Of a stretch of 64,000 bases of DNA, positions 6,696 through 32,700 are shown piece by piece; within the stretch, counting starts at the first letter, position 1; each line of letters opens with the position of its first letter. The DNA comes from Macrostomum lignano. Its lineage: Eukaryota. The notes below the pieces were generated by a model. That model did no database searches. It was not told the DNA's origin and saw nothing but the letters and a program-made list of their open reading frames with translations. The stretch is from the NCBI GenBank assembly GCA_002269645.1, contig NIVC01000899.1, positions 53,125 to 117,124 on the forward strand, read 5' to 3'. The translations under genes and the position numbers were made by a program.

Positions 6696-7320
6696 GAAAA
6701 CTTGCCACCGATTCAGACAGATGTTTTCAGCTTTCACTATGTTGGAAAAAGCTTACAAGTTGACCGGAAAAAAAGCAATTGTTTTTCTTCGGAAAAAATA
6801 CACGAGGTAACGCAATGCGAGCACATACTACTTAAGCCAACCCCAATAGGCCCTGGACACGCAAACAGACCGTGTTGGGGCCACGAGTTTCCAGGTCTCT
6901 CAGTGCGCATGGCCCGATCAGTCCGTTTTTCCCTGCCCTACCCGACAATGCCTGGCTCTATTATTTGGTGCTCTTTCTGTTTCTTGATAAACAATCAAGC
7001 TTGGCTGGAAGGCCCTCAAAACCAACTAAGAACTGGCTGTGTTGCCGTGTATCTTGGAGCTATTTTTGGCGAACACGATCTCGTGAGAGAGATGCTGAGC
7101 GGAGAGAAAACGGAGTGAGGGCTGTTTGGGGTCATTCGGAGAGAATCTTAAGCACATGACTGTCTTCTTTCTCTCCTCTGTCTCAGCTGCTCAGCTGCTT
7201 TTCTCAACCATAATAGTGACCGATTGCGTAAAGAGTAGACAGTACCTGCAGGAGCAGAGAGGGCCCGAATGTTCTGTTTTGGACTTTTTAGCAGTAAAAA
7301 AACTGGAAAGACTGTCAGAG

Positions 7321-8223
7321 ATGTCAGAGAGAAGCGTCAGTCTCGAGCTGCTTGCGGTTGATGGACGGCGGTTTCGCTGCCGGCCCGACCCAAGGCACTT
7401 CGCTCCAGTTCAAGGCCGGTTCGGGCGCATCTTCAGAGTGCGCATCAGCGCAGCCGAGACTAGCGAAAGCACCGCAGACGAGACGGCGGCAGTTTACTGC
7501 GCGGACAAGGCCGGCAGGAAGCTGCTTAGCTGCTTCAGCATCCTAGCGCAGTTGAAGCACGATAACATTGTGCGCCTCATCGCAGCTGCCAGGGACGCTG
7601 ACAGCGCCGCCTCGGTGTGCGTCCTCATGGAGTGGGTGGGCGCTGGCAGTCTACGCGACCTCATTGACCGAAGCGGCTGTCTGACAGAACCCTTGATTGG
7701 AGCGTACGCAAAACAGGTTTGTTTTATTCGTACATAGTCATTTAATTTAACTAATTTACATTGTTACATAACAATTAAAAACAAATTGACTTCGCAAACT
7801 GCAACATGGTCTCACTATCGGATGAGCTCTTGTCAATATCTGCTTTCTCTCTGTAAACTCTGATCCCGAAAAGGCATTGTAAAAATTTACTTCAATGCGC
7901 AGATCGGATCGGCCTTGAATTACCTGCACAGCCGCAGCATTCTGCACCGCAATGTGAAATGCCGGTCCGCACTGATCACGGAATCTGGCCATACTAAACT
8001 GGCCGGCTTCACCGCCTGCTGCCTCCTTGAAGAGGACGACCCTGACGCGTCGCTAGATGTCCGTCAGTTTGGCTGCTTTCTGGTCGAGATGGCTACCGGT
8101 AGGACCGGCTGCAAGGAGGCACCGGAATCTTCGACGAACCAGCTGCGCAGTCTGTGCGAAGCGTGCGCAGAGCAGCAGCGGCCTCGCATGGAGCAGCTGT
8201 TGCAGCTCGAATTTTTCCAGTGA
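7321..8223 (+). CDS. Pseudokinase domain 1 (STE11/MAP3K-like fold); either a stand-alone gene or the first module of a fusion
   Basis: Exons 7321-7716 and 7903-8219 (or 8223 if unspliced). QGRFGRIF, LKHDNIVRL, LMEWVGAGSL, YAKQ|IGSALNYLH. HRN replaces HRD, KLAGF replaces the DFG region, no VAxK lysine, no APE. The frame is open back to 7126, so the start codon is uncertain. Confidence 0.8.
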
Positions 8224-8568
8224 GTCCTCGCTATTGCCTGAGTCTGGTAATAAAAGCTTAGAAATATCAGAATTGAGAGTGGCGTTTAGAATGGAAAACA
8301 TGGAAAGCAAGGTCTTGGTTGAAAAAATACAGAAAAATGTTTTAACCAATGTTCGACAATGTCAAGTCGATTCTATTCTAAGAAAGTATGAGCTATGAGC
8401 TATAAATATGAGCTAGAAAGTATGAGCTATAAATTAGATTGTCTAAAAAAGAACAAACACATAGACATGAACAAATGGATTTCCTCTTCTAAAAAATTAC
8501 TGAACAATCATTTCCTGTTAAAGTAATGCCATAATAATGCTTGTTTCCGCCGCTGTTGTAACAAACAG

Positions 8569-11500
8569 AACGATGCAGTCGCTTAAGCCTCTGCTGTCGC
8601 CGTCGCCTCCGACGCCGACGCAAGCCCTCAGACCGGTGAAATCTGATCGCTGCCTCCTGGGCGGCCGAGCTGAAGTAGGTGCCAGCGCACCCGAGGTCCT
8701 CCTGCCACAGCGCCGGCTTGGAGAGAGCGACGCCACCGAGGAGCTGGACGATGATGACGAGGCCGGAGCCCGCGGTCTGGACAAGTACCGGCAGACAGAC
8801 GACGAGGATGAGGATTATTTCGAGCTGGAAGGGACGGATTTTGAAGAATTAATCGAAGAGGACGAAAATGAACAAGATGAGGAGGATGCGCAGGCCTGTC
8901 AAATTGATCGAGAACGCCTGCTGGGCCGCGGCCGGTTCGGCTCTGTATTCCGCGCTGACCTGCACGGAATGCCGGCCGCTGCGTACAGAACAACGCCCGG
9001 ATGTCCAGAGGAGACGCTAAAACAGTTTCGGGCAAGCTGTCTTATTCTTGGCAAACTGAGGCACGACTGCATTGTTCGACTCGTGAAAGTGCTGAGCGAC
9101 AGCTCCGGCTGTCTGACAGTCCTCACGGAGCTAGTTGAAGGCCGCAATCTGCGCTCCATTCTGACTCAGCGAAAGGCCGGATTTAGAGAAGGCGACCTCC
9201 GATCCTACTGCCGACAGGTATCAACCATATACTAAAAATGGTCTGTCGGTAGGTAGGTATGTAGGTATGTGTGTGATCGGTTTTAGCAAAAATGGCTCAA
9301 CCGATTTTCTTCGAACTTGCACTGTTCGATCAGAAATTTTTCCGTGACGGTACCAAGGACTACTTAACAACTCCTTGTTAAGTACTGTAGTCCTTGGACG
9401 GTACATGCATCGTAACTAAGAAATTTCTCGATGCTAAAAGGATTAAATATTCGAAAAACATGCTTTTTTGCAAAGGTCAAGCAGCTCTTTCGACTTGAAA
9501 TGCATTGTAAGAATGCTAGAGAAAAAAACTGACTGGTTGAATTCTGATTCTGAAATGGATTGCATCACAATTGGCTTTTTATTTATCGTCTGTGTAGTGG
9601 CTGAATTTTGAGACTGAATTGAACTGCGTCACAGTATTGAAAATGCAGTGTGGAAGCATAGCACAATTCTTGATTTATATTGCGTAACCATATTGCTAAC
9701 TTTAATACTGGTACTGACTTGCCTAAGAAATTGATTATGTCATTACTGCTTCGTGTGACTGAGTGTTGAATTATAAGTGCTACAAATAGATATACTAATT
9801 AATTTATAAATTCGATGAGAGCTAACCTAGATGTGACCACACTGGACGGCTAATGCAGCGACCTGAGTTCGAATCTTAGTAGTGTAAAAATAAAAGTAGC
9901 ATATTTTTTTTATTTAAAGCTTTTATTAAAGGGCTAATTAAAAAGACCTGGATTATGGCGCTTGATACACCAAGGATTATTGCACTTGATAAACCAAGGA
10001 TTACTGCACTTGATAAGCCAATGATTACTGCACTTGATAAACCAAGGATCACTGCACTTGATAAGCCAAGGATCACTGCACTTGATAAGCCAATGATTAC
10101 TGCACTTGATAAACCAAGGATTATTTCACTTGATAAACCAAGGATCACTGCGCTTGATAAACGAAGGATTATTGCACTTGATAAGCTAAGGATTATTGCA
10201 CTTGATAAACCAATGATTATTGCACTTGATAAGCCAAAAATTATTGCACTTGATAAGCCACGAATTATTGCACTTGATAAACCACGGATTATTGCACTAG
10301 ATTAGAAAGGGCTATTGTACTAGCCGAGACATTGATTTTTGGACTTGTTGAGTAAATGATTATTGCACTAGATGAGAAAATGATTATTTCACTGGCTTAG
10401 AAGCTGATTATTGCGCTGTCTAAAAAAGAGATTATTGCGCTAGCTGAGACGTGGATTGTTGCACAACCTGAGAAAGCGATTATTGCATTAGCAGAGGTAA
10501 CATTTGCACTAGCTACTTGCTGTCTGGTGGATGCTTGCTCTCGAGGGGGGGGGTACCTGCTAATTGAGAGAGGGGGGGGGGTACTGGCTACATGTATGGT
10601 ATTTTTTCTATCCAGGGATGCTTGCTATTCAGGGATTCTTGCTATCTGCAGGATGCTTGCTATCTGGGGTGATGCTTGCTATATGGGTGGATGCTTGCTA
10701 TCTGCGGTTGCTTACTTTTGGAGGGGGTGCTTGCTATCTGCGGTTGCTTACTTTTGGAGGGGGTGCTTGCTATCTGCGGTTGCTTACTTTTGGAGGGGGT
10801 GCTTGCTATCTGCGGTTGCTTACTTTTGGAGGGGGTTTCTTGCTATCTGCGGTTGCCTACTTTTGGAGGGGGGTGCTTGCTATCTGCGGTTGCTTACTTT
10901 TGGAGGGATGCTTGCTATCTGGGGGATGCTTGCTGTCTTGGGAATATTTTCTATTTAGGGGGAACGTCTGTTATCTTTGTGAAAGCTATATTTTGCTGTC
11001 GATTTATTAATTTTAGAAAAAAAGAGATTCATAGCAAATATCATTGTCCGTGACTATTTTACATGAATAAGGTGATTTTTAAAAGTGAAGAAGGTATTGG
11101 TTTTAATGCTTTTTAAATTTTCTATGAACTATTTGACTCCTTGCTTATTGGGCGCCCGATTGGGGCCGCACTAGATTGCTAGTCAGTTAACTAATCGTTT
11201 TAATTAGACTTTCGGTGTGTTTCATAACTCCGCTCTTACCCACTCACCAAGCCTGCCACATCAGCAGTTTAAAAGCGTTGACTTTCGTCACGAATACACG
11301 AATTACTGGGTTTTTTAACTTCCAAAAATCCCGTTTTACATGACAACTTAAACTAAATTGATATTCCAGATAGCATCAGCTTTGCTATATCTTCACGAAC
11401 AACGCCCTGCTTTGGTGCATCGCAACGTGAAATGCAAGAGCGTTCTGCTACAGCCGAACAGCAGTCTGAAGTTGGTCGGCTTCTCGCTATGCATGCGCCA

Positions 11501-11828
11501 GCAGCGAACGGCTCGTCCGCGCGAATGGGGCTCGCCGTGCTACCTAGCGCCAGAAGTTCTGCACTCTGCAGGAGCAGAATTCACTACCAAATCCGATGTG
11601 TGGGCTTTCGGCTGTCTGGTGTTTGAGTTGGCCACTGGGCGGCCGCCGAACGCGGAGCAGAGCCGCAATTTTGACCGTCTGCACGCCAGCATCTGTGTTG
11701 GCTCAATGCCGAGCCTGCCGATCGATAGCTCAGCGGCTCTTGGCGAGCTTTATCGGCTGTGCACGCAGCGCAGGCGTAAACGACGACCCGGAGTTCAACA
11801 CCTGCTAGCGCTGCCATTTTTTCAGTGA
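8569..11828 (+). CDS. Acidic linker plus pseudokinase domain 2 (STE11/MAP3K-like fold)
   Basis: Exons 8569-9217 (acceptor aacag at 8568; alternative 8524; in-frame ATG 8573) and 11370-11824 (or 11828). LGRGRFGSVF, LRHDCIVRL, YCRQ|IASALLYLH, HRNVKCKS, KLVGF, GSPCYLAPEV, SDVWAFGCLVFELATG. Catalytic Asp, DFG Asp and beta3 Lys are absent. Confidence 0.82.
9950..10302. repeat. 24-bp minisatellite (ggattattgcacttgataaaccaa)
   Basis: Tandem units inside intron 9218-11369. The ALDKPRII ORF is a by-product. Confidence 0.92.
10620..10935. repeat. 36-bp minisatellite (tgcttgctatctgcggttgcttacttttggaggggg) with degenerate flanks
   Basis: Tandem units in the same intron. Three overlapping repetitive ORFs are by-products. 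Confidence 0.88.
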
Positions 11829-11928
11829 GCAGCTATAGCATGAGTTTTTCACCTTTATCTTTTAAGCTATATGAACAGTAGGACCTCCGAATAAATGATA
11901 TTAAAATGCCCCGCCAAAACCTCAGCAG

Positions 11929-13554
11929 GAGCAGCCGTCCCTTGCTTGAACGTCGCAACTCCAGCTGCCAGCGCAGAAAGCCGTCGCTAGTTCGACAGAG
12001 AACAACCTCGGACTCGCAGGTCGTGGAAGAGCTTCAGCTACAGCAACAACAACAGCAGAGCAAACAGCAGCAAGAGCAGCAACAAGAACAGCAAAAACAA
12101 CAACAACAGCCGTCCTTAAGGTATTTTACTGCATATAAATTCTTATATACCAGCCATCCATTACCTGCTTTCCTTTCTCATTTTTTTAATTTTCGTCGCG
12201 GTGAAATTGCGAGCGCCTGAAAATGAAATATTTACTTTATTAGCTTGGATTTCTAAAGATATTGTCTCATCAATTGTCTGAAAAAAAGTTGATTCGTCGT
12301 CGAGTAAAACTAGACGAATCTCAGTATCGTTTTGCAATCATCCACTGTCGATTGGTATGTCGGATGCTCATGTACCGTTACCTTTACTATTTTACAGGTT
12401 TCCGCTGGTAACTCCTCGGCTTCAGCAGCTAAAGCCCAAGCAGCAACAGCAAGATTTAGAAGCATTTGAATCAGTAAAAGACGATGTCTTGAAAGGCCGA
12501 TCTGAGAAGCTTCATCGGAGTAGCTCGGAAGGCGGACCAGTCATGCAGCGTGCGCAAACGGCAGCTAAGCAGCAGCAGCAGCAGCCACAGCCGGAGCCTC
12601 TATTCGAGCCGATCAACAGCCTGCCTTCCTCAAATATCTACCCTCACTGCCAGCGTCCGCATGGCTACTGCCTGCTAATTAACGTCGAGCGATTCGCCAA
12701 TCCCAGCGAATTCCCTACACGGAACGGCAGCCTCGTGGATGTGGAGCGGGTGAGCCGCCTATTGCAGCGACTGGGATACCGGGTTCGAAGCATAGCTGAC
12801 CCAACTGCAGCCGGAATCTGCAAAGCTGCCATGCGCATCGCTTTGAAGAATCATGAAAATTACGACTCGTTCGTATGCTTCCTCATGTCGCACGGCACCA
12901 ACAACCAGATCGTGGGCTCGGACGGGCAGTACATCAGCCTTGGCCGCATCGCATCTTTCTTCGATAGCGACGTTTGCGCCGGACTAGCTGGCAAGCCAAA
13001 GCTGTTTTTTATTCAGGTAAAGCGAATAACCTCATTTTTATTCCTTTTACCAGTGTATAAACATGTTTCTAGAGAACTCAAATTCCCATAATTAATCATT
13101 GTTCCGACAGGCCTGTCGTGGCGAGCGTCAGCAACGTAATTTCGCCACCACACGAGCCGTGGCCGTGGGAGCTTCTGCCGACCAGGTCGCCACAGCGATC
13201 ACCGATGACGACGATGAGGCGGAGGAGCCGAACACGGGTGGCGTCTTATTCGCGCCTAAAGGTGTCGACTTCTTCTTTGGCTATGCGACCAGCGAAAAGT
13301 ACATCGCCTACAGGGATTCGCAAAGCGGCTCGGCATACGTTCGCGTCCTGTGTCGGGTGGTGGAGGCGTATGGAGCCAAGGAGGATCTGCTGCAACTGCA
13401 CACCCGAGTGACGGCGCTAATCTCGCGCAATCCGCAGGAGAACCAGTTCGGCTCGAAACTCTTCCAGGTCCCAGACATGCGCAGCAAGCTGACAAAACAG
13501 TTTTATTTTCTTCTAGGCTCATTGAAGAAAGTTTCTTCGGATCTTACTTCATAA
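11929..13554 (+). CDS. Caspase (p20+p10, predicted active, caspase-8/3-like) preceded by a glutamine-rich linker
   Basis: Exons 11929 (or 11926; in-frame ATG 11906)-12120, 12398-13016, 13111-13554, all phase-consistent. PHGYCLLIN, RNGSLVD, CFLMSHG (His codon 12891), KPKLFFIQ|ACRG (Cys codon 13114), DFFFGYAT, AYRDSQSGSAYV, SKLTKQFYF. Confidence 0.92.
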
Positions 13555-14561
13555 AAATATCTGAGTTTCTTAAAGCTCAACTGACCAGTAAGCAAGCAAA
13601 GTTACCCCAATAACAGCTGAAGTAGAAGGCACTCGATTTTCTTAGAAATGAGCTGGATGCCGGTACAAAAACAGGGATTTTTGGATCGGATTTTTTAGAG
13701 TGAATTTTTCTCGATCGAATTTGTCTACAGTGGAACCCGGTTCAGCCTTATGCGTTCCCTAGAGAATGCTGAGTGCACCAACGATGCGACGAATAAAAGT
13801 CCCTTATCGGCCTCTTGCTTATTTCTAAGAAAATCGAGTGTACAACATCGACACAACATACAACAACCTTGACAACATCGAAATCCAATTTTAAAATTTT
13901 GAAAACAAAATAAATTAACCGCACTTTGAACAACTCGATACAGTGGTGCCACCCTCATGCACTGCCTCTCGAGTGCTCGCACAGGTGGGTTCTTGAAATA
14001 TTCGACGGCCATTGTCACGCCATTAAAGCACCGTTAATCATTTTCGGATGATACGCTTGTATTCTAAGCTTTGTAGATAATAGTATCCGTCATGTCTTTC
14101 TTTAACCTCGTTCGTGCATTCCATTTAGTCTTTAGAATTGTTTATCATTCAGATTTTCTTTTTGAACATTTTTACACATTTTGATTTTGCAATATTTGAA
14201 TGGCAATTCCTTTTTCTGCGTAATTTTGCTTGATACTGGACTCTGACAGGGTCTTTCTGTTATTGCCGATTGCTCCAAACCGAATGCCTGTACAGTTAAA
14301 CCAAATGCGATTCGTAGTTTAACCGATAGAATTGCTTTGTGAAAGATAATGCTGCTTTTACTATCATCTTTAGATTAACTTGCCAAAATCGATCTACTCG
14401 TAGAAAACTCGTAGAAAAACATGATTATCCAGATGTTACGAGTATATTTTCTGATGTGCTCTGATTCAATAGATTAAATTCATATTATTTTCAGATTCTT
14501 GTTATCGGTCGTTGCAGAATCAGTTTTTTGTTTTTTTTGCGGAAAGCCTCAGTTAGTATTC

Positions 14562-16225
14562 AACCTGCTGCCATAGACAACACCCGGATTCACCCCGCTG
14601 CCATAGACAACACCCAGATTCACCTCGCTGCTATAGACAACACCCAGATTCACCCCGCTGCCATAGACAACACCCAGATTCACCCCGCTGCCATAGACAA
14701 CACTCAGATTCACCCCGCTGCCATAGACAACACCTAGATTCACCCCGCTGCCATAGGCAACACCCAGATCCACATAGACAACACCCAGATTCACCCCGCT
14801 GCCATAGACAACACTCAGATTCACCCCGCTGCCATAGACAACACTCAGATTCACCCCGCTGCCATAGGCAACACCCAGATCCACATAGACAACACCCAGA
14901 TTCACCCCGCTGCCATAGACAACACTCAGATTCACCCCGCTGCCATAGACAACACTCAGATTCACTCCGCTGCCATAGACAACACCCAGATTCACCCCGC
15001 TGCCATAGACAACACCCAGATTCACCCCGCTGCCATAGACAACACTCAGATTTACCCCGCTGCCATAGACAACACTCACATTCACCCCGCTGCCATAGGC
15101 AACACCCAGATCCACATAGACAACACCCAGATTCACCCCGCTGCCATAGACAACACTCAGATTCATTCCGCTGCCATAGGCAACACCCAGATCCACATAG
15201 ACAACACCCAGATTCACCCCGCTGCCATAGACAACACTCAGATTCACCCCGCTGCCATAGACAACACTCAGATTCACCCCGCTGCCATAGGCAACACCCA
15301 GATCCACATAGACAACACCCAGATTCACCCCGCTGCCATAGACAACACTCAGATTCACCCCGCTGCCATAGACAACACTCAGATTCACTCCGCTGCCATA
15401 GACAACACCCAGATTCACCCCGCTGCCATAGACAACACCCAGATTCACCCCGCTGCCATAGACAACACCCAGATTCACCCCGCTGCCATAGACAACACTC
15501 AGATTCACCCCGCTGCCATAGGCAACACCCAGATCCACATAGACAACACCCAGATTCACCCCGCTGCCATAGACAACACTCAGATTCACCCCGCTGCCAT
15601 AGACAACACTCAGATTCACTCCGCTGCCATAGACAACACCCAGATTCACCCCGCTGCCATAGACAACACCCAGATTCACCCCGCTGCCATAGACAACACT
15701 CAGATTTACCCCGCTGCCATAGACAACACTCACATTCACCCCGCTGCCATAGGCAACACCCAGATCCACATAGACAACACCCAGATTCACCCCGCTGCCA
15801 TAGACAACACTCAGATTCATTCCGCTGCCATAGGCAACACCCAGATCCACATAGACAACACCCAGATTCACCCCGCTGCCATAGACAACACTCAGATTCA
15901 CCCCGCTGCCATAGACAACACTCAGATTCACTCCGCTGCCATAGACAACACCCAGATTCACCCCGCTGCCATAGACAACACCCAGATTCACCCCGCTGCC
16001 ATAGACAACACTCAGATTCACCCCGCTGCCATAGACAACACTCAGATTCACCCCGCTGCCATAGGCAACACCCAGATCCACATAGACAACACCCAGATTC
16101 ACCCCGCTGCCATAGACAACACTCAGATTCACCCCGCTGCCATAGACAACACTCAGATTCACTCCGCTGCCATAGACAACACCCAGATTCACCCCGCTGC
16201 CATAGACAACACTCAGATTCTCCGC
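14562..16225. repeat. 30-bp minisatellite (gattcaccccgctgccatagacaacaccca) with interspersed 21-bp variant units
   Basis: More than 50 near-identical units. The 573-aa and 561-aa minus-strand ORFs are repeat translations. Confidence 0.97.
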
Positions 16226-18535: not shown

Positions 18536-19311
18536 CTATACCTACTCGTACAAAAACAGAATATTAAATGGTTAAGTTCTTTCATGCAGCAGCTATCAGT
18601 GGCAAAGTGCACCGTATGGGGAAACGTATTAAAACTTCAGTCATTGTGCACTGTGTAGAAAAATTGGAGGACTTGAGGCTTCTCAAGTTTGGTCGCACTG
18701 AGTACGCTGAGAAGCTGCCAGCTGCACCAGGGCAGTGAGGTCGGCTGGGTGTAGAAAGTATGGTCAAATGGACGCAGATACTCGTACTGCGTTTGAATCC
18801 GGCTGAACATAGTGGCAGACAAGAGGGGCAGCAGAGAATCTGGGAAACCCCACCGCCATTGTGTTGACGTGCGTTTGTGCGACCACCTCGGGCTCAGCAA
18901 GCGGCCTGCCCAATTAGATTCGCTTCTCTGTTAAAGAGCAGAGCACATTGTGGAGAGAAGCACAGTTCGGTTTACGCTGGCTTTCTTGCTTGCTCACCGC
19001 AGAAGCAGATACAGATGCGCACACGCTTTGACAACACAAGCGCGTGTAAGTGTTCCAGTCCATGTATCTTTCCAGCGTATATCTATTCAGTTAGAAGGCT
19101 ATATGGAAGTGCTGCCGTATTCCTAAATAAGTAAGCCAGGCGCAGAAACAGAAAAGCTTGGCTGGAATAGAAATGTTAGAGAAGAACGCGTAGGTGAAAG
19201 CTGTTGCAGGTGAAACTCCCTCTACTCCAATCACAGAGGGAACACTGACAGCTCTCAGCTGGGACACTAGCGAGGGGAGCCGAGCTCTAAGGATTGGAGG
19301 TCCTTCTCAGC

Positions 19312-22300
19312 ATGTCTACAGGAAACCTATCAGGACCAGCGACAGCAGCACCCTACTGCCGTACCACCCTGTGGCAGATTGTTGTCGGCTCCGCAGCTGG
19401 TGTGTACTTTGCGGCGCTGCTCACCGCAGCTGCCTTCCATCTAATTAATGACGCGTGCTCCAAGCGGAACAAGGAGGTTGAAGACATGAATCGGCGCAAG
19501 CTGTTTGGCAAAGATCACAGATCTTCGCTTCAAACGCGAATCCATCTGGAGTGCATGGCGCTTGTCAAGGGAGCAAACAATGCCGGCAAAGTACTGGTGA
19601 GCCATTATAATAAGTTACAAGTTACACCACACATCGATCCTAATGGTGATATTCTTGAGTTAATTTGTCACATAAATATCCAACAGCCGCACACTGCACC
19701 TTTCAGCTCGCACTGTACTCCATGTGCGTCGTTGTTTCGTTCATAGTTTACGTTTTTATGACGTACTCATTCTCATCGGCTAATCCGGGCCTCTCGAAAA
19801 GCTTGCAGTCCTGTCACTCGAGCAGCCGGTTCAACGCAATTCATGTTGACTTTGCAATTAACGTGTTTTATAGCCTTGTGTTCGTCTGCAGAGTAAGTAG
19901 AACTTGCTGGTTTCGTTTGGTTGTTGTTCTCTGTTATTTTAGTGTAATTATTCCGTTTAATTTCTGTTCAGCTAATCGCAAGCGATTCGAAGCTCAATTT
20001 TTTCTTGTCCATGGAGACGATAGCCGATCATTTGACCTTGATACCATCATTTATCATGTACTTTATGGATAAGTATATGATTGGTGAGTCAAAATATCTT
20101 TTTAGGAAAATTAGGTACAAATCAATCAAGCATTCAGACTGGTGTCATTTTCAATCGAACGGTTTCAGTGTTCCAGTTCGCCCGGCTTGGCGGCCTGAAG
20201 TTCTTAGTGAACGCATTGATTTACTGCCAAATACTAAAAGCAGAGCGGGAAATTCGCCTGATGAAGCTGCTGCTGCAAATCATCATAATCTGGCTCGCTA
20301 GCGCCGGGTTCTTCCAGTTGGTAGGAATTCCTTTTGCTCCAATGTTGACAGGAAAACGTGAAATAGATTTAACTATCATTGCTTGTTCGGGACGCATGAA
20401 TTCAGATCGAATCGGTCGGTGATTTTTGGAACGAGGACGGTGGCTTGCTCTCCTCATCGTTTCTGGACTTTCACAACTGCTTTTACACCATGCTGATCAC
20501 CATGAGCACCGTGGGCTACGGCGACTATTCGCCCAGAACTGTTCTGGGGAAATTCTTCATCATTATATTCGTAATACTGGCACTGGTGAGCAATTAGTAA
20601 AGTATGCAAATTAACTAGTAGAGTATGCAGAATTCCCCAAACGACAAGCCTGATGGACTGGATTGCTCAAATTGCAGGGTCTGTTCACCAGCATAGTGCC
20701 TGAAATATCTGCAATCATGATGGAGAGTAAAAAGTACCGGAGAAACAAGATTCACCTTATGCACGGAAGAAGGTGAAGAATCGGCTGAAGTAAAAAGTGT
20801 TAATCATTAGTTAATCATTGCATTCAATAAAATTTTAGACATGTTGTTTTAGCCGGAAACTTCGATGTGCCTACGGTGGAGACTTTTTTCAACGACTTTT
20901 ACTCGAACGGACGAGACGAAAATAAAATGGAATTTCTTGCAATGATCGGAGAGTAAGTACCATCAACTGTTCAGTAAAACGAGTCAATAGCACTTATTTT
21001 CCTGGTTCAAAAGGTAGAAAATGTAAAAAAATTGTTGAATCACCATTTAGAGTCATTTACATTTACAAATTAGTTATGTGTATATGCATATTTTTCGGCG
21101 CTTTGCTTTTATTTGATGGCTCAGTTGATGTCCGTGTGAACAAGCCATATGGAAAAGTGGTCGCTTGCAAAACCCATTTGCAAAAAATAACGGTAAGTCA
21201 AATAGACACCACGACACGCAGGCAAAAAACACAGAAAAGCATCACACCATCAATAATTTAGAGAGGAGCCGAGTCCTGAGATGCAAGCCCTGTTAAAAAC
21301 GCGAGAACTTTACGTTACTTACCTGCACGGCAACGTGATGTCGCTTCGAGACCTAAAGCGCGCCGAGCTCAAACTGGCCACCGCCACAATCATACTGGCT
21401 GACGGCTTGACTAATGACCCCGAGGACGAAGACGTAAAGAACATTATGCGAGTCATCGCTATCAAGGACTACTGTCCAAATATACGTATAATAGTGCAAC
21501 TGCACCTGTACAAGAGTAAGACTTATTTAAGAAACATACCGGACTGGAGCGCCGTTCATGGTGACCAGGCGCTGTGCATAAACGAAATGAAATACGGAGT
21601 CCTTGCTCAGAGCTGCCTCGCTCCTGGAGTATCCACCCTATTGGGTAATCTGCTGACGTTGCGATCATTCAAGCCGATGAAAGACAAAGAGAATCGCTGG
21701 GAGAATGTGTACCTTGAAGGCGCAACATTCGAATTCTACAAGGTAAAGTTTGCACCGATTTTTCACGGCTTAACGTTCCAGCAGGCCACTCGAATATGCT
21801 ACGATCTGTTAGAAATCATGCTTCTGGCCGTTCAAGTCACGAACGATGGATCGCGACAGACCGTCATCAATCCGGGTTCGCAGCTGATAATCGATACGAA
21901 CACAATGGAGGCCTTCGTCATTGCCAAAGACAAAAAGCAAGCAAAAGGGTGAGTAGTGAATTACAGCTCCGTTTTAATATTTCCAATATTTACAAACTTT
22001 TCTAGTGCAAAAAATCTTATTCCATACATTTAGCGTATCTCATCTTCGTCTAAGCTCTGAGGATGAAGCGCAAAGTACATCTACGGAGGCATACTTTTCG
22101 CTGCAGCGGCGCAGCAACCAGCGGTTGCACGAGAACAATAACAATAACAGAGTAAATTCGAAGCCGTTTCACCAGCACCAGCTGGCTCTGGAAGAGCAGG
22201 AGGGATATTTGCATGATCAGACTGAAGACTGGATGGAGAGTCAAAACGACGAAGTGTCGGAGAGTCCAGTGCAGCAGATACGAAATCCCAAACAGATGTC

Positions 22301-25300
22301 GCAGATTCAGACGGATTTTTCGTCAGACTTTGAGCACAGCTTCCCGACTGAACAGCTCGAAGTCAAAAGTGTCGATAGCAATCCCACAGATCCCATAGGT
22401 GAGATCGAGATATCACTCTGTAACTTAGTTACAAGCTCTGCTCCGTTTTTAGACACCTGGTTTCAGGATCAATTCTGAAAAGCACGGACTTAGATGGTCC
22501 GACCGGGCGCAGCTTGGTTGGGTGTTAAACAAGTGGGACGTGGCTCTTGTGCGTTGGTGCGGGGGATGGTGAAGCCTTGCCTAGGTCACGTGGCCCCGGT
22601 TTGGGTGGCGTGTATTTAATACACGCGCCAAGCGCGTATCGACTCGTAAAATGCGGCCAGGCTCGAACCTGCGCCACTCGTGCCAACTGCCTTGACTTCG
22701 TCTCACTGGTTTAAATGAAGTATAACTGATCGAAAACTATTTTCTGTTGTTTTTATATGTAGAATATTTCTAGTTACTTTTTTACTTGCAATAAAGTTTG
22801 TTGAAAAGCATGAGTTTTGGGGGTAAATAAAAGTTTTCAATGTTATTACATGTATGTCGAAGCGTAGCCACACCAAAAAAGCAATCTCCAATGAGCAAAA
22901 GTATGCATACGGGCTACAAGTAATTTGCAACAATTTTGAAAATTTCATTTAAAGCAAGCACTAATAGGTAATTTAATGAATAATTTCTCAAATTTCAGAA
23001 AGGCTTTGCAGTCGACCAACCAGTGCGGGCGAACCGAGACCGCTGTCGCAAAGTGAATCGTGAGTTGATTATCGCCGGATACGATGAAGTCGAATCGCTG
23101 TGTATGTAAGTCGATCCCAAACCACACCCTCGCCATTCAGACGTGAGTCCAGTCAGAGGCTGCAGCCCGAGCTGCCCGGCGATCAGGAGCTGGACTCCAG
23201 CGGCTATTTCCACTGGGTCTCCAACCGCTCGGCTGGTACAGTCGTGCTGAACAACCACAAAGTCCACCAATTCCGAAATCACATTGTTGTGTGCGTTGTT
23301 GAGAAGCGTTCCGACGTTCTGCTTAACATTACTTCCTTTATCATGCCGCTGCGAGCGAGCACAATACCGAAGAGAGAGCTCAAGGATATTGTTTTCGTAG
23401 GCAACATCGATCTCATATTCAACGAATGGAGCGTTATCCAGAATTTTCCTGGAATCTATGCTCTCAACGGTTCCACGTTAAACCGAGCCAATCTCAAAGC
23501 CGTCAACATCGAATACGTTGACTGTTGCGTGATACTGTCGCCGAAGGCGAACTCATTACAAGCGAACGCCCAGGCTGACCGGGAGACAGTGCTGTGCACT
23601 CTCAACATCAAAACGATGCGGCACCCGGAGACTGGACGCCGCCTCGGCGACACAATTCACATTGTGACTGAGCTGAACAGCGTCGGCTCAATCGAGTACC
23701 TTGATCAGGATGACGAAATGGAGGTTGAGGAGCCGTTCATGACGCAAGCATTTGCCACCGGGCGGACCGTTTACCTCAGCTTGCTCGGCTCCATCGCTAC
23801 AACGGTAACGATAAGCTCCAAACCACTTTATTCTATGGTTATTAAATTTCACGAAAATTTAGGTAACTTTTGAGCTTATGAAAACGTAAATTTTTGAGAT
23901 GAAGTTCGATTCAGAATGAAAAGTTTTAATACGATTTACTGTACGATGTTACTTACGATCTTACTGTTCCGTCGAGTTTCTTAAAGTTGAAAAAGCACAA
24001 GAAGCAGTTTGGTCTTCGGAATGATTTTACAGGATTTATATAATAAAGTAAAGTTTGAAAAGCCATTTAACATCATCAAATGATGTACAAAGCGACAACA
24101 TATATGCAAAATCACGCAAAACTTAGTCAAACTTAATGGCGATGTGAACGAGTTTTACATACATGTGAGATCAGGTTCGTTCGACACATAGGAACGAAAG
24201 CACCGTTTTGATGTTGAACTAACGACGTACGGGAATTAAACTGAAGCATCAAAACTCTTTCGTTACCCACAGATTTACTTCAACGAGCCGGCCCTAAACT
24301 TTCTGAGAACAATACTCACCACAGTCGATTCGGACAATCTAGAAATCGATCTCAACGAGCAGGGTTTTCATTTCATGTCTCTAGAGCAGACTAACGAATT
24401 GATGAGACCGCGGCTGGATCGGCCAGCCGATGCGAGACCCACGGGGCCGCATTTGAGAAGCAAAATTCAGCTGTTTAGCGTCTTGGAGCAACCGCTGCGC
24501 TGTCTGTACGAGTTGGAGGTGCGTTTGACTCCTACAGCCACTTTAAGTCTCAGTATGAGTAAAGCCATCACCGCAGCTACTACACTGACCTCTACTGCAG
24601 CTACTACCCCGACCTCTACTGCAGCTACTACCCCGACCTCTACTGCAGCTACTACCCCGACCTCTACTGCAGCTACTACCCCAACCTCTACTGCAGCTAC
24701 TACCCGACCTCTACTGCAGCTACTACCCCGACCTCTACTGCACCTACTACACCAACCTCTACTGCAGCTACTACCCCGACCTCTACTGCACCTACTACAC
24801 CAACCTCTACTGCAGCTACTACCCCGACCTCTACTGCACCTACTACACCAACCTCTACTGCAGCTACTACCCCGACCTCTACTGCACCTACTACCCCGAT
24901 CTCTAATTGCAGCGACCGTATCTATCTTTTAGATGTAAATAGTATTTTTAATGCAGTCGAGGCGTCAATTCAGCACATTACTAAATTTACCCGTTTCCTT
25001 CTTTTGCAGGGTACCGCAGGCTGCCAGTGGCGCGATCTTGCCGCACGGTGCTTGGACCAGCTGGAGTCGGTCTGCATCGGCATCTCCAGACTGCAGGTTA
25101 CCCAGCCGGATGCTAAGAACCACCGTTATGTAATTGCCATGCCGCCCGCTGAGATGGAGTTGGTACCCACAGACAAGGTGAGCTTTGTTGTAAATTCAAA
25201 ATGCTATAATCACAATCGCAGATGCTAAAACAATGGCTTACGGACATTTCCCCTCCGGCATTTCCCCTCCGGCGTTTTCCCTCCGGCATTTCCCCTCCGG

Positions 25301-26794: not shown

Positions 26795-29700
26795 TTAAAA
26801 GTCTTTGTCCCAGCCGGTGACGTCATCCGGCGGCTGTTCCGCATCGGGAGGATACTCGTCGAAATTGCTGGCATCCACTGGAGACGAAATCTGGAAACAA
26901 ATGTTGTAGAGGACTAATGGAGGCCAAAAGAGGACAAACAGGACTGAGTGACACACTCAGAAGGACATGGTAAGTAGTGACACGTAGAAAAATGGAGTGA
27001 CACACTAAGGACATGGTTACACACTGAGAACACAGTGACACGTAAAAAATGGAGTGACACACGCAGGCCATGGTTACACACTGAGAACACAGTGACACGT
27101 AGAAAAATGGAGTGACACACGCAGGCCATGGTTACACACTGAGAACACAGTGACACGTAGAAAAATGGAGTGACACGCAGAAGGACATGGTTATACACTG
27201 AGGACACAGTGACACGTAGAAAAATGGAGTGACACGCAGAAGGACATGGTTATACACTGAGGACACAGTGACACGTAGAAAAATGGAGTGACACGCAGAA
27301 GGACATGGTTACACACTGAGGACACAGTGACACGTAGAAAAATGGAGTGACACACTAAGGACATGGTTACACACTGAGAACACAGTGACACGTAGAAAAA
27401 TGGAGTGACACACTCAGGACATGGTTACACACTGAGAACACAGTGACACGTAGAAAAATGGAGTGACACACGCAGGCCATGGTTACACACTGAGAACACA
27501 GTGACACGTAGAAAAATGGAGTGACACGCAGAAGGACATGGTTATACACTGAGGACACAGTGACACGTAGAAAAATGGAGTGACACGCAGAAGGACATGG
27601 TTACACACTGAGAACACAGTGACACGTAGAAAAATGGAGTGACACACGCAGGCCATGGTTACACACTGAGGACACAGGGACACATAGAAAAATGGAGTGA
27701 CACACGCAGGACATGGTTACACACTGAGAACACAGTGACACGTAGAAAAATGGAGTGACACACGCAGGCCATGGTTACACACTGAGGACACAGTGACACG
27801 TAGAAAAATGGAGTGACACGCAGAAGGACATGGTTACACACTGAGGACACAGTGACACGTAAAAAAATGGAGTGACACACGCAGGCCATGGTTACACACT
27901 GAGGACACAGTGACACGTAAAAAAATGGAGTGACACACGCAGGCCATGGTTACACACTGAGGACACAGTGACACGTAAAAAAATGGAGTGACACACGCAG
28001 GCCATGGTTACACACTGAGGACACAGTGACACGTAGAAAAATGGAGTGACACACGCAGGACATGGTTACACACTGAGGACACAGTGACACGTAGAAAAAT
28101 GGAGTGACACACTCGGGACATGGTTACACACTGAGGACACAGTGACACGTAGAAAAATGGAGTGACACACGCAGGACATGGTTACACACTGAGGACACAG
28201 TGACACGTAGAAAAATGGAGTGACACACGCAGGACATGGTTACACACTGAGGACACAGTGACACGTAGAAAAATGGAGTGACACACTCAGGACATGGTTA
28301 CACACTGAGGACACAGTGACACGTAGAAAAATGGAGTGACACACGCAGGACATGGTTACACACTGAGGACACAGTGACACGTAGAAAAATGGAGTGACAC
28401 ACGCAGGACATGGTTACACACTGAGGACACAGTGACACGTAGAAAAATGGAGTGACACACGCAGGCCATGGTTACACACTGAGAACACAGTGACACGTAG
28501 AAAAATGGAGTGACACACGCAGGCCATGGTTACACACTGAGAACACAGTGACACGTAGAAAAATGGAGTGACACGCAGAAGGACATGGTTATACACTGAG
28601 GACACAGTGACACGTAGAAAAATGGAGTGACACGCAGAAGGACATGGTTATACACTGAGGACACAGTGACACGTAGAAAAATGGAGTGACACGCAGAAGG
28701 ACATGGTTACACACTGAGGACACAGTGACACGTAGAAAAATGGAGTGACACGCAGAAGGACATGGTTATACACTGAGAACACAATGACACGTAGAAAAAT
28801 GGAGTGACACGCAGAAGGACATGGTTACACACTGAGGACACAGTGACACGTAGAAAAATGGAGTGACACACGCAGGACATGGTTACACACTGAGAACACA
28901 GTGACACGTAGAAAAATGGAGTGACACACGCAGGCCATGGTTACACACTGAGGACACAGTGACACATAGAAAAATGGAGTGACACACGCAGGACATGGTT
29001 ACACACTGAGAACACAGTGACACGTAGAAAAATGGAGTGACACACGCAGGCCATGGTTACACACTGAGGACACAGTGACACGTAGAAAAATGGAGTGACA
29101 CACGCAGGCCATGGTTACACACTGAGGACACAGTGACACGTAGAAAAATGGAGTGACACGCAGAAGGACATGGTTACACACTGAGGACACAGTGACACGT
29201 AAAAAATGGAGTGACACACGCAGGCCATGGTTACACACTGAGGACACAGTGACACGTAAAAAATGGAGTGACACACGCAGGCCATGGTTACACACTGAGG
29301 ACACAGTGACACGTAAAAAAATGGAGTGACACACGCAGGCCATGGTTACACACTGAGGACACAGTGACACGTAGAAAAATGGAGTGACACACGCAGGACA
29401 TGGTTACACACTGAGGACACAGTGACACGTAGAAAAATGGAGTGACACACGCAGGACATGGTTACACACTGAGGACACAGTGACACGTAGAAAAATGGAG
29501 TGACACACGCAGGACATGGTTACACACTGAGGACACAGTGACACGTAGAAAAATGGAGTGACACACGCAGGACATGGTTACACACTGAGGACACAGTGAC
29601 ACGTAGAAAAATGGAGTGACACACTCAGGACATGGTTACACACTGAGACACAGTGACACGTAGAAAAATGGAGTGACACACGCAGGACATGGTTACACAC

Positions 29701-32700
29701 TGAGGACACAGTGACACGTAGAAAAATGGAGTGACACACGCAGGACATGGTTACACACTGAGGACACAGTGACACGTAGAAAAATGGAGTGACACACTCG
29801 GGACATGGTTACACACTGAGGACACAGTGACACGTAGAAAAATGGAGTGACACACGCAGGACATGGTTACACACTGAGGACACAGTGACACGTAGAAAAA
29901 TGGAGTGACACACGCAGGACATGGTTACACACTGAGGACACAGTGACACGTAGAAAAATGGAGTGACACACTCAGGACATGGTTACACACTGAGGACACA
30001 GTGACACGTAGAAAAATGGAGTGACACGCAGAAGGACATGGTTATACACTGAGGACACAGTGACACGTAGAAAAATGGAGTGACACGCAGAAGGACATGG
30101 TTACACACTGAGGACACAGTGACACGTAGAAAAATGGAGTGACACGCAGAAGGACATGGTTATACACTGAGAACACAATGACACGTAGAAAAATGGAGTG
30201 ACACGCAGAAGGACATGGTTACACACTGAGGACACAGTGACACGTAGAAAAATGGAGTGACACACGCAGGACATGGTTACACACTGAGAACACAGTGACA
30301 CGTAGAAAAATGGAGTGACACACGCAGGCCATGGTTACACACTGAGGACACAGGGACACATAGAAAAATGGAGTGACACACGCAGGACATGGTTACACAC
30401 TGACAACACAGTGACACGTAGAAAAATGGAGTGACACACGCAGGCCATGGTTACACACTGAGGACACAGTGACACGTAGAAAAATGGAGTGACACACGCA
30501 GGCCATGGTTACACACTGAGGACACAGTGACACGTAGAAAAATGGAGTGACACGCAGAAGGACATGGTTACACACTGAGGACACAGTGACACGTAAAAAA
30601 ATGGAGTGACACACGCAGGCCATGGTTACACACTGAGGACACAGTGACACGTAGAAAAATGGAGTGACACGCAGAAGGACATGGTTATACACTGAGGACA
30701 CAGTGACACGTAGAAAAATGGAGTGACACGCAGAAGGACATGGTTATACACTGAGGACACAGTGACACGTAGAAAAATGGAGTGACACGCAGAAGGACAT
30801 GGTTACACACTGAGGACACAGTGACACGTAGAAAAATGGAGTGACACACTAAGGACATGGTTACACACTGAGAACACAGTGACACGTAGAAAAATGGAGT
30901 GACACACTCAGGACATGGTTACACACTGAGAACACAGTGACACGTAGAAAAATGGAGTGACACACGCAGGACATGGTTACACACTGAGAACACAGTGACA
31001 CGTAGAAAAATGGAGTGACACACGCAGGCCATGGTTACACACTGAGGACACAGGGACACATAGAAAAATGGAGTGACACACGCAGGACATGGTTACACAC
31101 TGAGAACACAGTGACACGTAGAAAAATGGAGTGACACACGCAGGCCATGGTTACACACTGAGGACACAGTGACACGTAGAAAAATGGAGTGACACGCAGA
31201 AGGACATGGTTACACACTGAGGACACAGTGACACGTAGAAAAATGGAGTGACACACGCAGGCCATGGTTACACACTGAGGACACAGTGACACGTAGAAAA
31301 ATGGAGTGACACGCAGAAGGACATGGTTACACACTGAGGACACAGTGACACGTAAAAAATGGAGTGACACACGCAGGCCATGGTTACACACTGAGGACAC
31401 AGTGACACGTAAAAAATGGAGTGACACACGCAGGCCATGGTTACACACTGAGGACACAGTGACACGTAAAAAAATGGAGTGACACACGCAGGCCATGGTT
31501 ACACACTGAGGACACAGTGACACGTAGAAAAATGGAGTGACACACGCAGGACATGGTTACACACTGAGGACACAGTGACACGTAGAAAAATGGAGTGACA
31601 CACTCGGACATGGTTACACACTGAGGACACAGTGACACGTAGAAAAATGGAGTGACACACGCAGGACATGGTTACACACTGAGGACACAGTGACACGTAG
31701 AAAAATGGAGTGACACACGCAGGACATGGTTACACACTGAGGACACAGTGACACGTAGAAAAATGGAGTGACACACTCAGGACATGGTTACACACTGAGG
31801 ACACAGTGACACGTAGAAAAATGGAGTGACACACGCAGGACATGGTTACACACTGAGGACACAGTGACACGTAGAAAAATGGAGTGACACACGCAGGCCA
31901 TGGTTACACACTGAGAACACAGTGACACGTAGAAAAATGGAGTGACACACGCAGGCCATGGTTACACACTGAGAACACAGTGACACGTAGAAAAATGGAG
32001 TGACACACGCAGGCCATGGTTACACACTGAGAACACAGTGACACGTAGAAAAATGGAGTGACACGCAGAAGGACATGGTTACACACTGAGAACACAGTGA
32101 CACGTAGAAAAATGGAGTGACACACGCAGGACATGGTTACACACTGAGGACACAGTGACACGTAGAAAAATGGAGTGACACGCAGAAGGACATGGTTATA
32201 CACTGAGGACACAGTGACACGTAGAAAAATGGAGTGACACGCAGAAGGACATGGTTACACACTGAGGACACAGTGACACGTAGAAAAATGGAGTGACACA
32301 CTAAGGACATGGTTACACACTGAGAACACAGTGACACGTAGAAAAATGGAGTGACACACTCAGGACATGGTTACACACTGAGAACACAGTGACACGTAGA
32401 AAAATGGAGTGACACACGCAGGCCATGGTTACACACTGAGAACACAGTGACACGTAGAAAAATGGAGTGACACGCAGAAGGACATGGTTATACACTGAGG
32501 ACACAGTGACACGTAGAAAAATGGAGTGACACGCAGAAGGACATGGTTATACACTGAGGACACAGTGACACGTAGAAAAATGGAGTGACACGCAGAAGGA
32601 CATGGTTATACACTGAGGACACAGTGACACGTAGAAAAATGGAGTGACACGCAGAAGGACATGGTTATACACTGAGGACACAGTGACACGTAGAAAAATG

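Follow-up and report, generated by a model that had tools for sequence, protein, structure and literature searches.

Positions 7321 to 13554 (plus strand) of the stretch analysed here, 64,000 nucleotides of the Macrostomum lignano contig NIVC01000899.1 (assembly GCA_002269645.1, contig positions 53,125 to 117,124; hereafter the window), are the M. lignano gene BOX15_Mlig010610g1, which is real and already annotated. We are highly confident that it is a single, expressed and selectively maintained gene for a 1024-residue long-prodomain (initiator-type) caspase, in which two tandem dead STE20-like kinase domains, here termed PK1 and PK2, form the prodomain and the protease is apparently competent. 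The protein is genuine and unusual, it belongs to a tractable animal, for which RNA interference and transgenesis exist, and it is already catalogued.

Gene model and transcript evidence

Splicing the seven window exons 7195-7716, 7903-8219, 8569-9217, 11370-11824, 11926-12120, 12398-13016 and 13111-13554 rebuilds the deposited protein PAA75167.1 (P0067, BOX15_Mlig010610g1, 1066 amino acids, labelled 5' partial) residue for residue, and the window is therefore its locus. Counted from the Met at 7321, the deposited product has 1024 residues. A first-pass annotation had joined seven exons from this Met into 3072 nucleotides with one stop, the terminal one, and a product of 1023 residues, all exon boundaries being GT...AG. 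Six of its exons match the coding sequence of PAA75167.1, whereas the acceptor of exon 5 had been placed 3 nucleotides off, at 11929 instead of 11926. The annotated acceptor, 11925/11926, is the first AG of a tandem cag/cag, the second (11928/11929) being the one taken previously; the first AG gives ...PFFHRSSRP... and the second ...PFFQSSRP.... Because both AGs keep the frame, two isoforms one residue apart are possible at this tandem acceptor (11920-11931).

All elements of the gene lie on the plus strand. The annotated mRNA opens with a 5' leader (7195-7320), the frame of PAA75167.1 starting at 7195 directly after an AG (ctgctcag/CTG). Exon 1 (7321-7716) carries the start codon and the N-lobe of PK1 (residues 1-132, with VQGRFG and with Cys60 in AVYC), and exon 2 (7903-8219) its C-lobe (residues 133-238, HRN at 147-149 and GFT at 167-169), ending in FFQ at a phase-2 GTGAG donor. 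Intron 2 (8220-8568, 349 nucleotides) contains an in-frame TGA at 8221-8223 and AATAAA at 8249. An acidic linker (residues 239-345, 31% Asp plus Glu) and the N-lobe of PK2, with an intact GRGRFG and with Arg377, are encoded by exon 3 (8569-9217); intron 3 (9218-11369, 2152 nucleotides), which includes two minisatellites, separates it from exon 4 (11370-11824), the C-lobe of PK2 (HRN 471-473, GFS 491-493, APE), which closes with FF and CA at a second phase-2 GTGAG donor. Intron 4 (11825-11925, 101 nucleotides) holds an in-frame TGA (11826-11828), AATAAA at 11890, ATTAAA at 11900 and the tandem acceptor. The basic, Q-rich linker begins in exon 5 (11926-12120), a symmetric phase 2-2 exon, and continues into exon 6 (12398-13016), which also encodes the large-subunit region of the caspase with Arg779 (TRNG), His836 (SHG) and Gln877, so spacing PK2 and the caspase by 140 flexible, Q-rich residues. 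Exon 7 (13111-13554) supplies ACRG (Cys879), the intersubunit linker, in which D909-D912 form an Asp run, the small-subunit region including Arg945, and the terminal TAA.

Both kinase units had appeared as open frames ending in FFQ-stop, which the first-pass annotation took for splice donors; the window sequence indeed reads CA/GTGAG, in phase 2, at the two sites. The proposed order of pseudokinase, acidic linker, pseudokinase, Q-rich linker and caspase within one gene also stands, as the RNA-seq-built annotation holds this coding sequence at two loci. Pfam recognizes Pkinase twice (1e-59; 202.5 bits over two stretches) and Peptidase_C14 (1.3e-49) in the 1023-residue product. In a protein search the best entry, P0001, was PAA54824.1 of M. 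lignano (BOX15_Mlig031106g1, 1027 residues, 98% identical, with the same three Pfam families), and its cluster also contains PAA75167.1 and two older split models, a kinase of 459 and a caspase of 357 residues. The second protein search omitted this cluster although the query is a member of it.

The Mlig_3_7 annotation that contains these proteins is based on RNA-seq and is not ab initio: it combines STAR mapping and StringTie/TACO assembly with a de novo transcriptome (PMC5730564). Its TBONE pipeline splits a transcriptional unit at each internal mRNA end that is marked by spliced-leader reads or poly(A) tags (PMC5730564), and the fused coding sequence was kept whole at both loci. In the older ML2 set, models P0068 and P0190 likewise splice over intron 2 and so link PK1 with PK2 (FFQTMQSL).

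As a separate observation, the older ML2 and UniProt models of both loci (P0068, P0069, P0070 and P0190) are faulty: one reads on past the donor of exon 3 into the following intron (...CRQVSSIY-stop), another drops 39 residues including FFIQ ahead of the active site, and another drops part of PK1. UniProt entries beginning with A0A1I8F and A0A1I8G present the 'kinase' and the 'caspase' as separate proteins.

Domains, family and selection

The earlier claim that the kinase domains are catalytically dead is confirmed by alignments with solved kinases and with M. lignano paralogues, in which both domains have lost catalytic residues. Since the β3 Lys, the αC Glu, the HRD Asp, the catalytic-loop Asn and the DFG Asp are missing, both are pseudokinases. 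HRD is replaced by HRN in each (HRNVKCRS, HRNVKCKS), with loss of the catalytic base, and the catalytic-loop Asn by Ser; DFG reads GFT in PK1 and GFS in PK2, so that the metal-binding Asp is gone. The position of the β3 (VAIK) Lys is occupied by Cys60 in PK1 and Arg377 in PK2, and that of the αC Glu by Ser or Cys, with no Glu in either domain. PK2 retains a perfect GRGRFG loop and the APE motif. In PK1 the loop is degraded (VQGRFG, first Gly gone), and about 30 residues, covering the activation segment and APE, are missing. An AlphaFold2 model of PK1 (residues 1-243) nevertheless reaches a predicted local distance difference test score of 83.1 and a predicted template modelling (TM) score of 0.82, and Foldseek superposes it on the kinase folds of Aurora A, MST2, MST3 and SLK at TM scores of 0.71-0.78. 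The confidence of the model and this superposition indicate that PK1 is, as predicted, a folded, trimmed kinase-like domain despite the missing activation segment. Structure prediction was confined to PK1: for the full length the kinase rows align at 9-15% identity, and because just two rows, nearly identical to each other, span the whole protein, a predicted packing of its domains would not be trustworthy.

In the protease, alignment to caspase-3 and CED-3 upholds the earlier statement that SHG, QACRG and the Arg/Gln/Arg pocket are kept. The Peptidase_C14 match scores 169.4 bits against a curated cut-off of 21.4 (residues 759-1008 of the 1023-residue product). The catalytic dyad, His836 (SHG) and Cys879 (QACRG), aligns with zebrafish and human caspase-3 and with CED-3 at E-values down to 7e-35, and the S1 pocket is formed by Arg779 (TRNG), Gln877 and Arg945 (AYRD), aligned with Arg64, Gln161 and Arg207 of caspase-3. 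The pair of Trp residues that flanks the pocket in caspase-3 (SWR, GSWF) is Tyr and Ala in the M. lignano protein, which may alter subsite preference. The intersubunit linker contains AITDDDDE (906-913) at the place where initiator caspases autoprocess, and this run offers candidate sites. From its conserved residues, the protease domain looks competent for cleavage after Asp. Pfam detects no CARD or DED death-fold prodomain, its matches being Pkinase/PK_Tyr_Ser-Thr and Peptidase_C14 only. Intron 6, in phase 0, splits the active-site pentapeptide as Q/ACRG (13014-13122); in a paralogous gene (locus L002, described below) the entire caspase domain lies in one exon.

Relatives were sought with HMMER, using the full protein as query against 1.84 billion representatives and considering the best 150. 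Within this set the nearest single-domain relative is the M. lignano ankyrin-repeat (ANK) caspase PAA56209.1 (39% identity). By neighbour joining, the caspase forms a pair with PAA76300.1, a further ANK-caspase of M. lignano (bootstrap 66), and both fall within a wider group of M. lignano multi-domain caspases (bootstrap 22); because support is between 22 and 66, we do not claim a monophyletic M. lignano caspase radiation. The placement beside ANK-caspases agrees with that reported in a published survey (PMC11463336).

The closest relative of PK1 is PK2 and vice versa (36% identity when the family is aligned; BLASTP E=5e-26); their match scores 89 bits, compared with the 81 bits that PK2 reaches with its best solved kinase. 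They have in common a phase-0 intron site (AKQ/IGSAL, CRQ/IASAL) and a phase-2 intron after the final FF. The mutual best match, the common inactivating substitutions and the common introns point to duplication of a two-exon unit that would already have been dead. The module boundaries of the gene are phase-2 introns, and exons 3 plus 4 and exon 5 are symmetric 2-2 units; together with the shared phase-0 intron, this fits assembly by exon duplication and shuffling.

The related kinase/caspase fusion proteins recovered with HMMER all come from M. lignano, and Pfam confirmed their architectures: ANK-kinase-kinase (PAA71750.1 and copies), kinase-kinase (PAA67439.1), ANK-kinase-caspase (PAA47029.1, PAA50850.1, PAA59155.1), and kinase, caspase-like domain, ANK and caspase (PAA89054.1; the A0A1I8GZ94 group). 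BOX15_Mlig002250 is an ANK-kinase-kinase paralogue and BOX15_Mlig018903 an ANK-kinase-caspase paralogue. Every protein with both kinase and caspase recovered in the protein and domain-architecture comparison is likewise from M. lignano. Seventeen long multi-kinase matches were examined and contain no QACxG-type caspase motif. An Eisenia andrei kinase-caspase, mentioned in PMC11463336, was not recovered in the protein searches.

The motifs D[IV]WAFGC and LH..P..HR.xxC are common to PK1, PK2 and the paralogous M. lignano kinases in the alignment. Most of the paralogues keep the Lys, HRD, DFG and APE; the second domain of PAA67439.1 has HRN and GFG. The gene for PAA47029.1 at locus L002, whose exon mapping covers the protein from residue 444 onward, has a phase-0 intron (6220/6294) before ICSALQYMH, at the same site of the fold as 7716/7903 and 9217/11370 in the window. 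An active paralogous kinase finds its best solved-structure matches in the STE20-group enzymes STK25, STK24, MST4, SLK and STK10 (about 1e-38). With 24-33% identity to the family kinases, PK1 and PK2 are its most divergent members. On these alignments they are best placed in a worm-specific expansion of STE20-like kinases, as inactivated members that have diverged the furthest; the expansion includes PAA71750.1, PAA67439.1, PAA47029.1 and PAA89054.1. An assignment to the WNK family ('HRxxKC', top match WNK3) was rejected, as STK10, BRAF and NEK7 score equally and the active paralogue leads to STE20/GCK.

Further members of this modular M. lignano set combine ANK with caspase, or Ras/Roc GTPase with caspase (one with two GTPase domains), or are tandem or triple kinases, and the caspase-like domain of the kinase-ANK-caspase protein is Cys-less. 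Modular kinase/caspase proteins outside the window are found at L002:3001-11202 (PAA47029.1) and among the matches P0195, P0199, P0203, P0209, P0210, P0217, P0277, P0331 and P0358.

Contig NIVC01002856.1 carries the second locus (L001), which matches the window colinearly across the 26 kb compared, at about 95-97% identity, and which, when spliced at the homologous positions, gives PAA54824.1 exactly, with the same junctions. A duplicated genome is known for this M. lignano strain, and a colinear second locus is consistent with that. Frame-breaking indels between the copies are confined to introns 1-3 and the 5' leader, and intron 2 differs by indels of 5, 6, 1 and 3 nucleotides; the single real coding indel, of 9 nucleotides, lies in the poly-Q region. 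The copies differ by 22 synonymous and 16 non-synonymous substitutions, a ratio of non-synonymous to synonymous rates (dN/dS) of 0.23 with a synonymous excess at p=8e-6. In this two-copy comparison dN/dS is 0.10 for PK2 (p=0.0016) and 0.09 for the caspase (p=0.001); PK2 and the caspase are under purifying selection. Diversifying selection was not detected in the comparison, which is one of two near-identical copies.

Activation and alternative readings

The long prodomain makes the protein an initiator caspase by the usual definition, and initiators are activated by induced proximity. Textbook initiator caspases are activated through CARD or DED death folds; here the sole candidate proximity modules are the two pseudokinases. 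Since PK2 is under purifying selection although its catalysis is dead, it has a non-catalytic job. We tentatively favour, at slightly less than even confidence, activation of this initiator-type caspase by pseudokinase-mediated oligomerisation, the pseudokinase modules filling the role of CARD or DED. The caspase domains would be gathered by pairing of kinase folds, of the pseudokinases either with each other or with predicted-active paralogous kinases such as the ANK-kinase-kinase protein, the acidic and Q-rich linkers serving as flexible tethers. Clustered caspase domains could then dimerise and cut themselves in the Asp-rich intersubunit linker (D909-D912) to become active. Kinase folds often function by pairing: SLK and STK10, which are among the nearest relatives of solved structure, form dimers with exchanged activation segments, and STRAD, KSR, HER3 and the JAK JH2 domain work by pairing with partners. 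That the pseudokinases drive oligomerisation, that the caspase processes itself and that the protein has any role in death or immunity are steps that we infer.

Several points weigh against this picture, some against the mechanism and others against the gene as we read it. The linker between PK2 and the caspase is a flexible, Q-rich stretch of 140 residues, whereas RNase L and IRE1 have a rigid connection from kinase lobe to effector, and dimerisation of these particular pseudokinases would follow by analogy. Neither the word-indexed search nor the best 150 of the 1.84 billion representatives yielded an orthologue outside M. lignano or a relative from another species above about 40% identity. 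PK1 (dN/dS 0.47) and the linkers, with few changes, do not display significant purifying selection, and the synonymous divergence of the two copies is only about 3%. Support for the junctions comes from the construction of the public annotation, not from reads inspected in this analysis. Finally, both introns that open with TGA hold a polyadenylation-like signal 26-75 nucleotides further on, identical at the duplicate locus; AATAAA or ATTAAA within 100 nucleotides is expected by chance in about 10-20% of cases (about 0.1-0.2 per intron).

The three mechanistic readings that we weighed, oligomerisation, a sensor or decoy function and autoinhibition, share the same anatomy. The second of these, put forward in the first-pass annotation, holds that the dead kinases mimic the targets of effectors or upstream kinases, and that their binding or modification frees the caspase or makes it cluster, similarly to plant tandem kinase proteins or MLKL with RIPK3. 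The tandem dead kinases, with PK2 at least under purifying selection, are in line with it, and so are the active paralogous kinases as possible upstream partners and the membership of the gene in a lineage-specific, domain-shuffled family, as is frequent for immune and death genes. Yet no pathogen, effector or ligand is known, two near-identical copies would not reveal diversifying selection, and the protein is without a ligand-binding module such as the ANK repeats of its paralogues. We consider this reading unlikely.

Somewhat less probable still is an autoinhibitory prodomain, in which the pseudokinases and the acidic linker keep the caspase inactive or mislocalised until upstream caspases cut Asp sites in the linkers, the protein then being an executioner and not an initiator. 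The acidic linker has 15 xxxD sites and the Q-rich one 4, and among solved structures the protease domain is matched best by caspase-3, CED-3 and caspase-6. Asp-rich acidic linkers are, however, common low-complexity sequence, and the neighbour-joining tree groups the caspase, with weak support, with long-prodomain ANK-caspases. PMC11463336 likewise has the kinase-prodomain caspase beside the ANK-caspases, a sister group of the DED-caspases.

That the fusion is a minor or spurious product of the gene model appears quite improbable. According to this reading one precursor yields three products, a kinase, a second kinase and a caspase, with 3' ends at the intronic polyadenylation signals and 5' ends made by spliced-leader trans-splicing. 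M. lignano has operons and frequent trans-splicing (PMC5730564, PMC8629364), its spliced leader terminates in ATG (PMC8629364), AATAAA/ATTAAA lies 26-75 nucleotides beyond the in-frame stops at 8221 and 11826, each unit has a downstream in-frame Met, and the older ML2 annotation carried separate kinase (459 residues) and caspase (357 residues) models. Conversely, the coding sequence came intact at both loci through a pipeline that cuts wherever there is spliced-leader or poly(A) evidence, both junctions have consensus GTGAG...CAG sites, the first of them is crossed by ML2 models too, and a leader AUG joined at 8569, 11926 or 11929 would be out of frame. Shorter kinase-only isoforms arising by intron retention or intronic polyadenylation are possible from the sequence, PK1 alone with 238 residues and PK1-PK2 with 606, and these hypothetical products would stop exactly at the kinase domain boundary. 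Given the operons of M. lignano and the polyadenylation-like signals in the two introns, an operon or short-isoform reading stays a minor rival.

The AG ahead of 7195 may itself serve as a spliced-leader acceptor. A leader ATG joined at 7195 would be in frame in the window copy and would add 43 residues, an extension that is not conserved in the duplicate; because of an 8-nucleotide indel there at the duplicate locus, 7195-7320 is not conserved coding sequence.

A decaying recent fusion without a role of its own is very unlikely, as its distribution in one species in the databases searched, the lost kinase residues and a PK1 dN/dS of 0.47, not significantly below 1, are opposed by a 3 kb open frame retained in both copies, an overall dN/dS of 0.23 (p=8e-6), with values near 0.1 for PK2 and the caspase, and fully intact caspase catalytic residues.

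Related systems and genomic surroundings

The first-pass annotation knew of no description of this architecture. That view does not hold: a survey by Horkan et al. (Genome Biol Evol 2024, 16:evae204, PMC11463336) lists a caspase of M. lignano whose prodomain resembles a protein kinase, and the protein has been in GenBank and UniProt within the 2017 Mlig_3_7 annotation. With the architecture published and the protein in both databases, the finding is already known. The published caspase shares with ours the species, the GenBank set (PAA accessions) and a kinase prodomain next to ANK-caspases, and by this description it most probably corresponds to this gene or to the duplicate. A full-text literature search found no paper naming the locus tags. 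The portions of PMC11463336 that could be searched contain no statement of two kinase domains, of catalytic death or of a STE20-like origin, and no mention of at least four further unusual M. lignano caspase architectures including ANK-caspases. The paper restricts ANK-caspases to parasitic flatworms, reports no other caspase with an unusual prodomain in flatworms, and places ANK-caspases as sister to DED-caspases with the kinase-prodomain caspase adjoining them. The M. lignano proteins in GenBank contradict both the restriction of ANK-caspases and the statement on unusual prodomains, and the published picture of one odd M. lignano caspase, with ANK-caspases only in parasitic flatworms, understates the repertoire of the genome. 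Besides this, the gain here is a modest one, the correction of one splice site and the recognition of the kinases as pseudokinases of STE20-like origin.

Among known systems, the flatworm ANK-caspases are the nearest relatives by caspase domain and likewise have a long prodomain that is not a death fold; unlike them, the present protein has no ankyrin repeats according to Pfam, such repeats being found in the paralogues P0217, P0277 and P0225. RNase L and IRE1 resemble it in carrying a kinase-fold module N-terminal to an executioner enzyme. The order of RNase L is ANK, pseudokinase and effector, the same as in the paralogous ANK-kinase-caspase PAA47029.1. This comparison concerns domain order only, for here the effector is a caspase and not a KEN RNase, the junction is a flexible linker of 140 residues and not rigid, and there are two pseudokinases and no ANK sensor. 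MLKL, which is switched by RIPK3, also unites a dead kinase and a death effector in one chain, with active related kinases in the same genome; its effector, in contrast, is an N-terminal membrane-disrupting four-helix bundle, and apart from the kinase fold the sequences are unrelated. Plant tandem kinase proteins (of the Rpg1, WTK/Yr15 and Sr62 type) share tandem kinase folds with at least one pseudokinase, an origin by duplication or fusion, and lineage-specific families. They differ in having no protease and separate signalling partners, whereas the flatworm protein has two dead domains and carries the executioner in the same chain, and the origin, in an animal, is independent. RNase L/IRE1, MLKL and the plant proteins may thus be regarded as the closest functional analogies, with no claim of membership in any of these classes.

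STRAD-α, a STE20-group pseudokinase and allosteric activator of LKB1, offers a parallel in residue losses (Arg for the β3 Lys, no HRD Asp, Gly for the DFG Asp) with a partner-binding role kept; unlike the domains described here, it is a single stand-alone domain. No STRAD entry occurs in the 60 best matches to solved structures that were listed for PK1 or PK2.

Flatworms are reported to be without FADD (PMC11463336). A prodomain of paired, conserved dead kinases with live kinase relatives in the genome is a concrete and testable alternative wiring for caspase activation. A broader and speculative idea, to which we attach little probability, is that M. lignano possesses a lineage-specific cell-death or immune kit in which STE20-like kinase and pseudokinase modules, ANK repeats and Ras-like GTPases are fused to caspases and replace the death-fold adaptors that flatworms lack. 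Its members would be the PK-PK-caspase, ANK-PK-caspase, PK-caspase-ANK-caspase, ANK-caspase and Ras-caspase proteins, and the tandem-pseudokinase caspase would be an animal decoy-plus-executioner. If this were true, a dead-kinase sensor would fire the protease on engagement by an active kinase of the family or by a foreign factor.

The window is eukaryotic in character, with moderate G+C and many minisatellites. Two of these lie inside intron 3, at 9950-10302 (24 base pairs, 14.7 copies) and at 10654-10921 (36 base pairs, 7.4 copies). A 30-base-pair array of 58 copies follows just downstream of the gene (14558-16220), and a 58-base-pair satellite of about 117 copies (6.8 kb, with a very strong AT skew of 0.45) occupies 26976-33816. 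Upstream on the same strand is the 3' part of an SNF-family transporter gene (1 to about 5080), identified by colinearity with the duplicate locus, and downstream, also on the same strand, a Slowpoke/BK potassium channel gene (about 19300-24900) with BK_channel_a and Slo-like RCK matches. The order of SNF transporter, kinase-caspase and BK channel is conserved at the duplicate locus.

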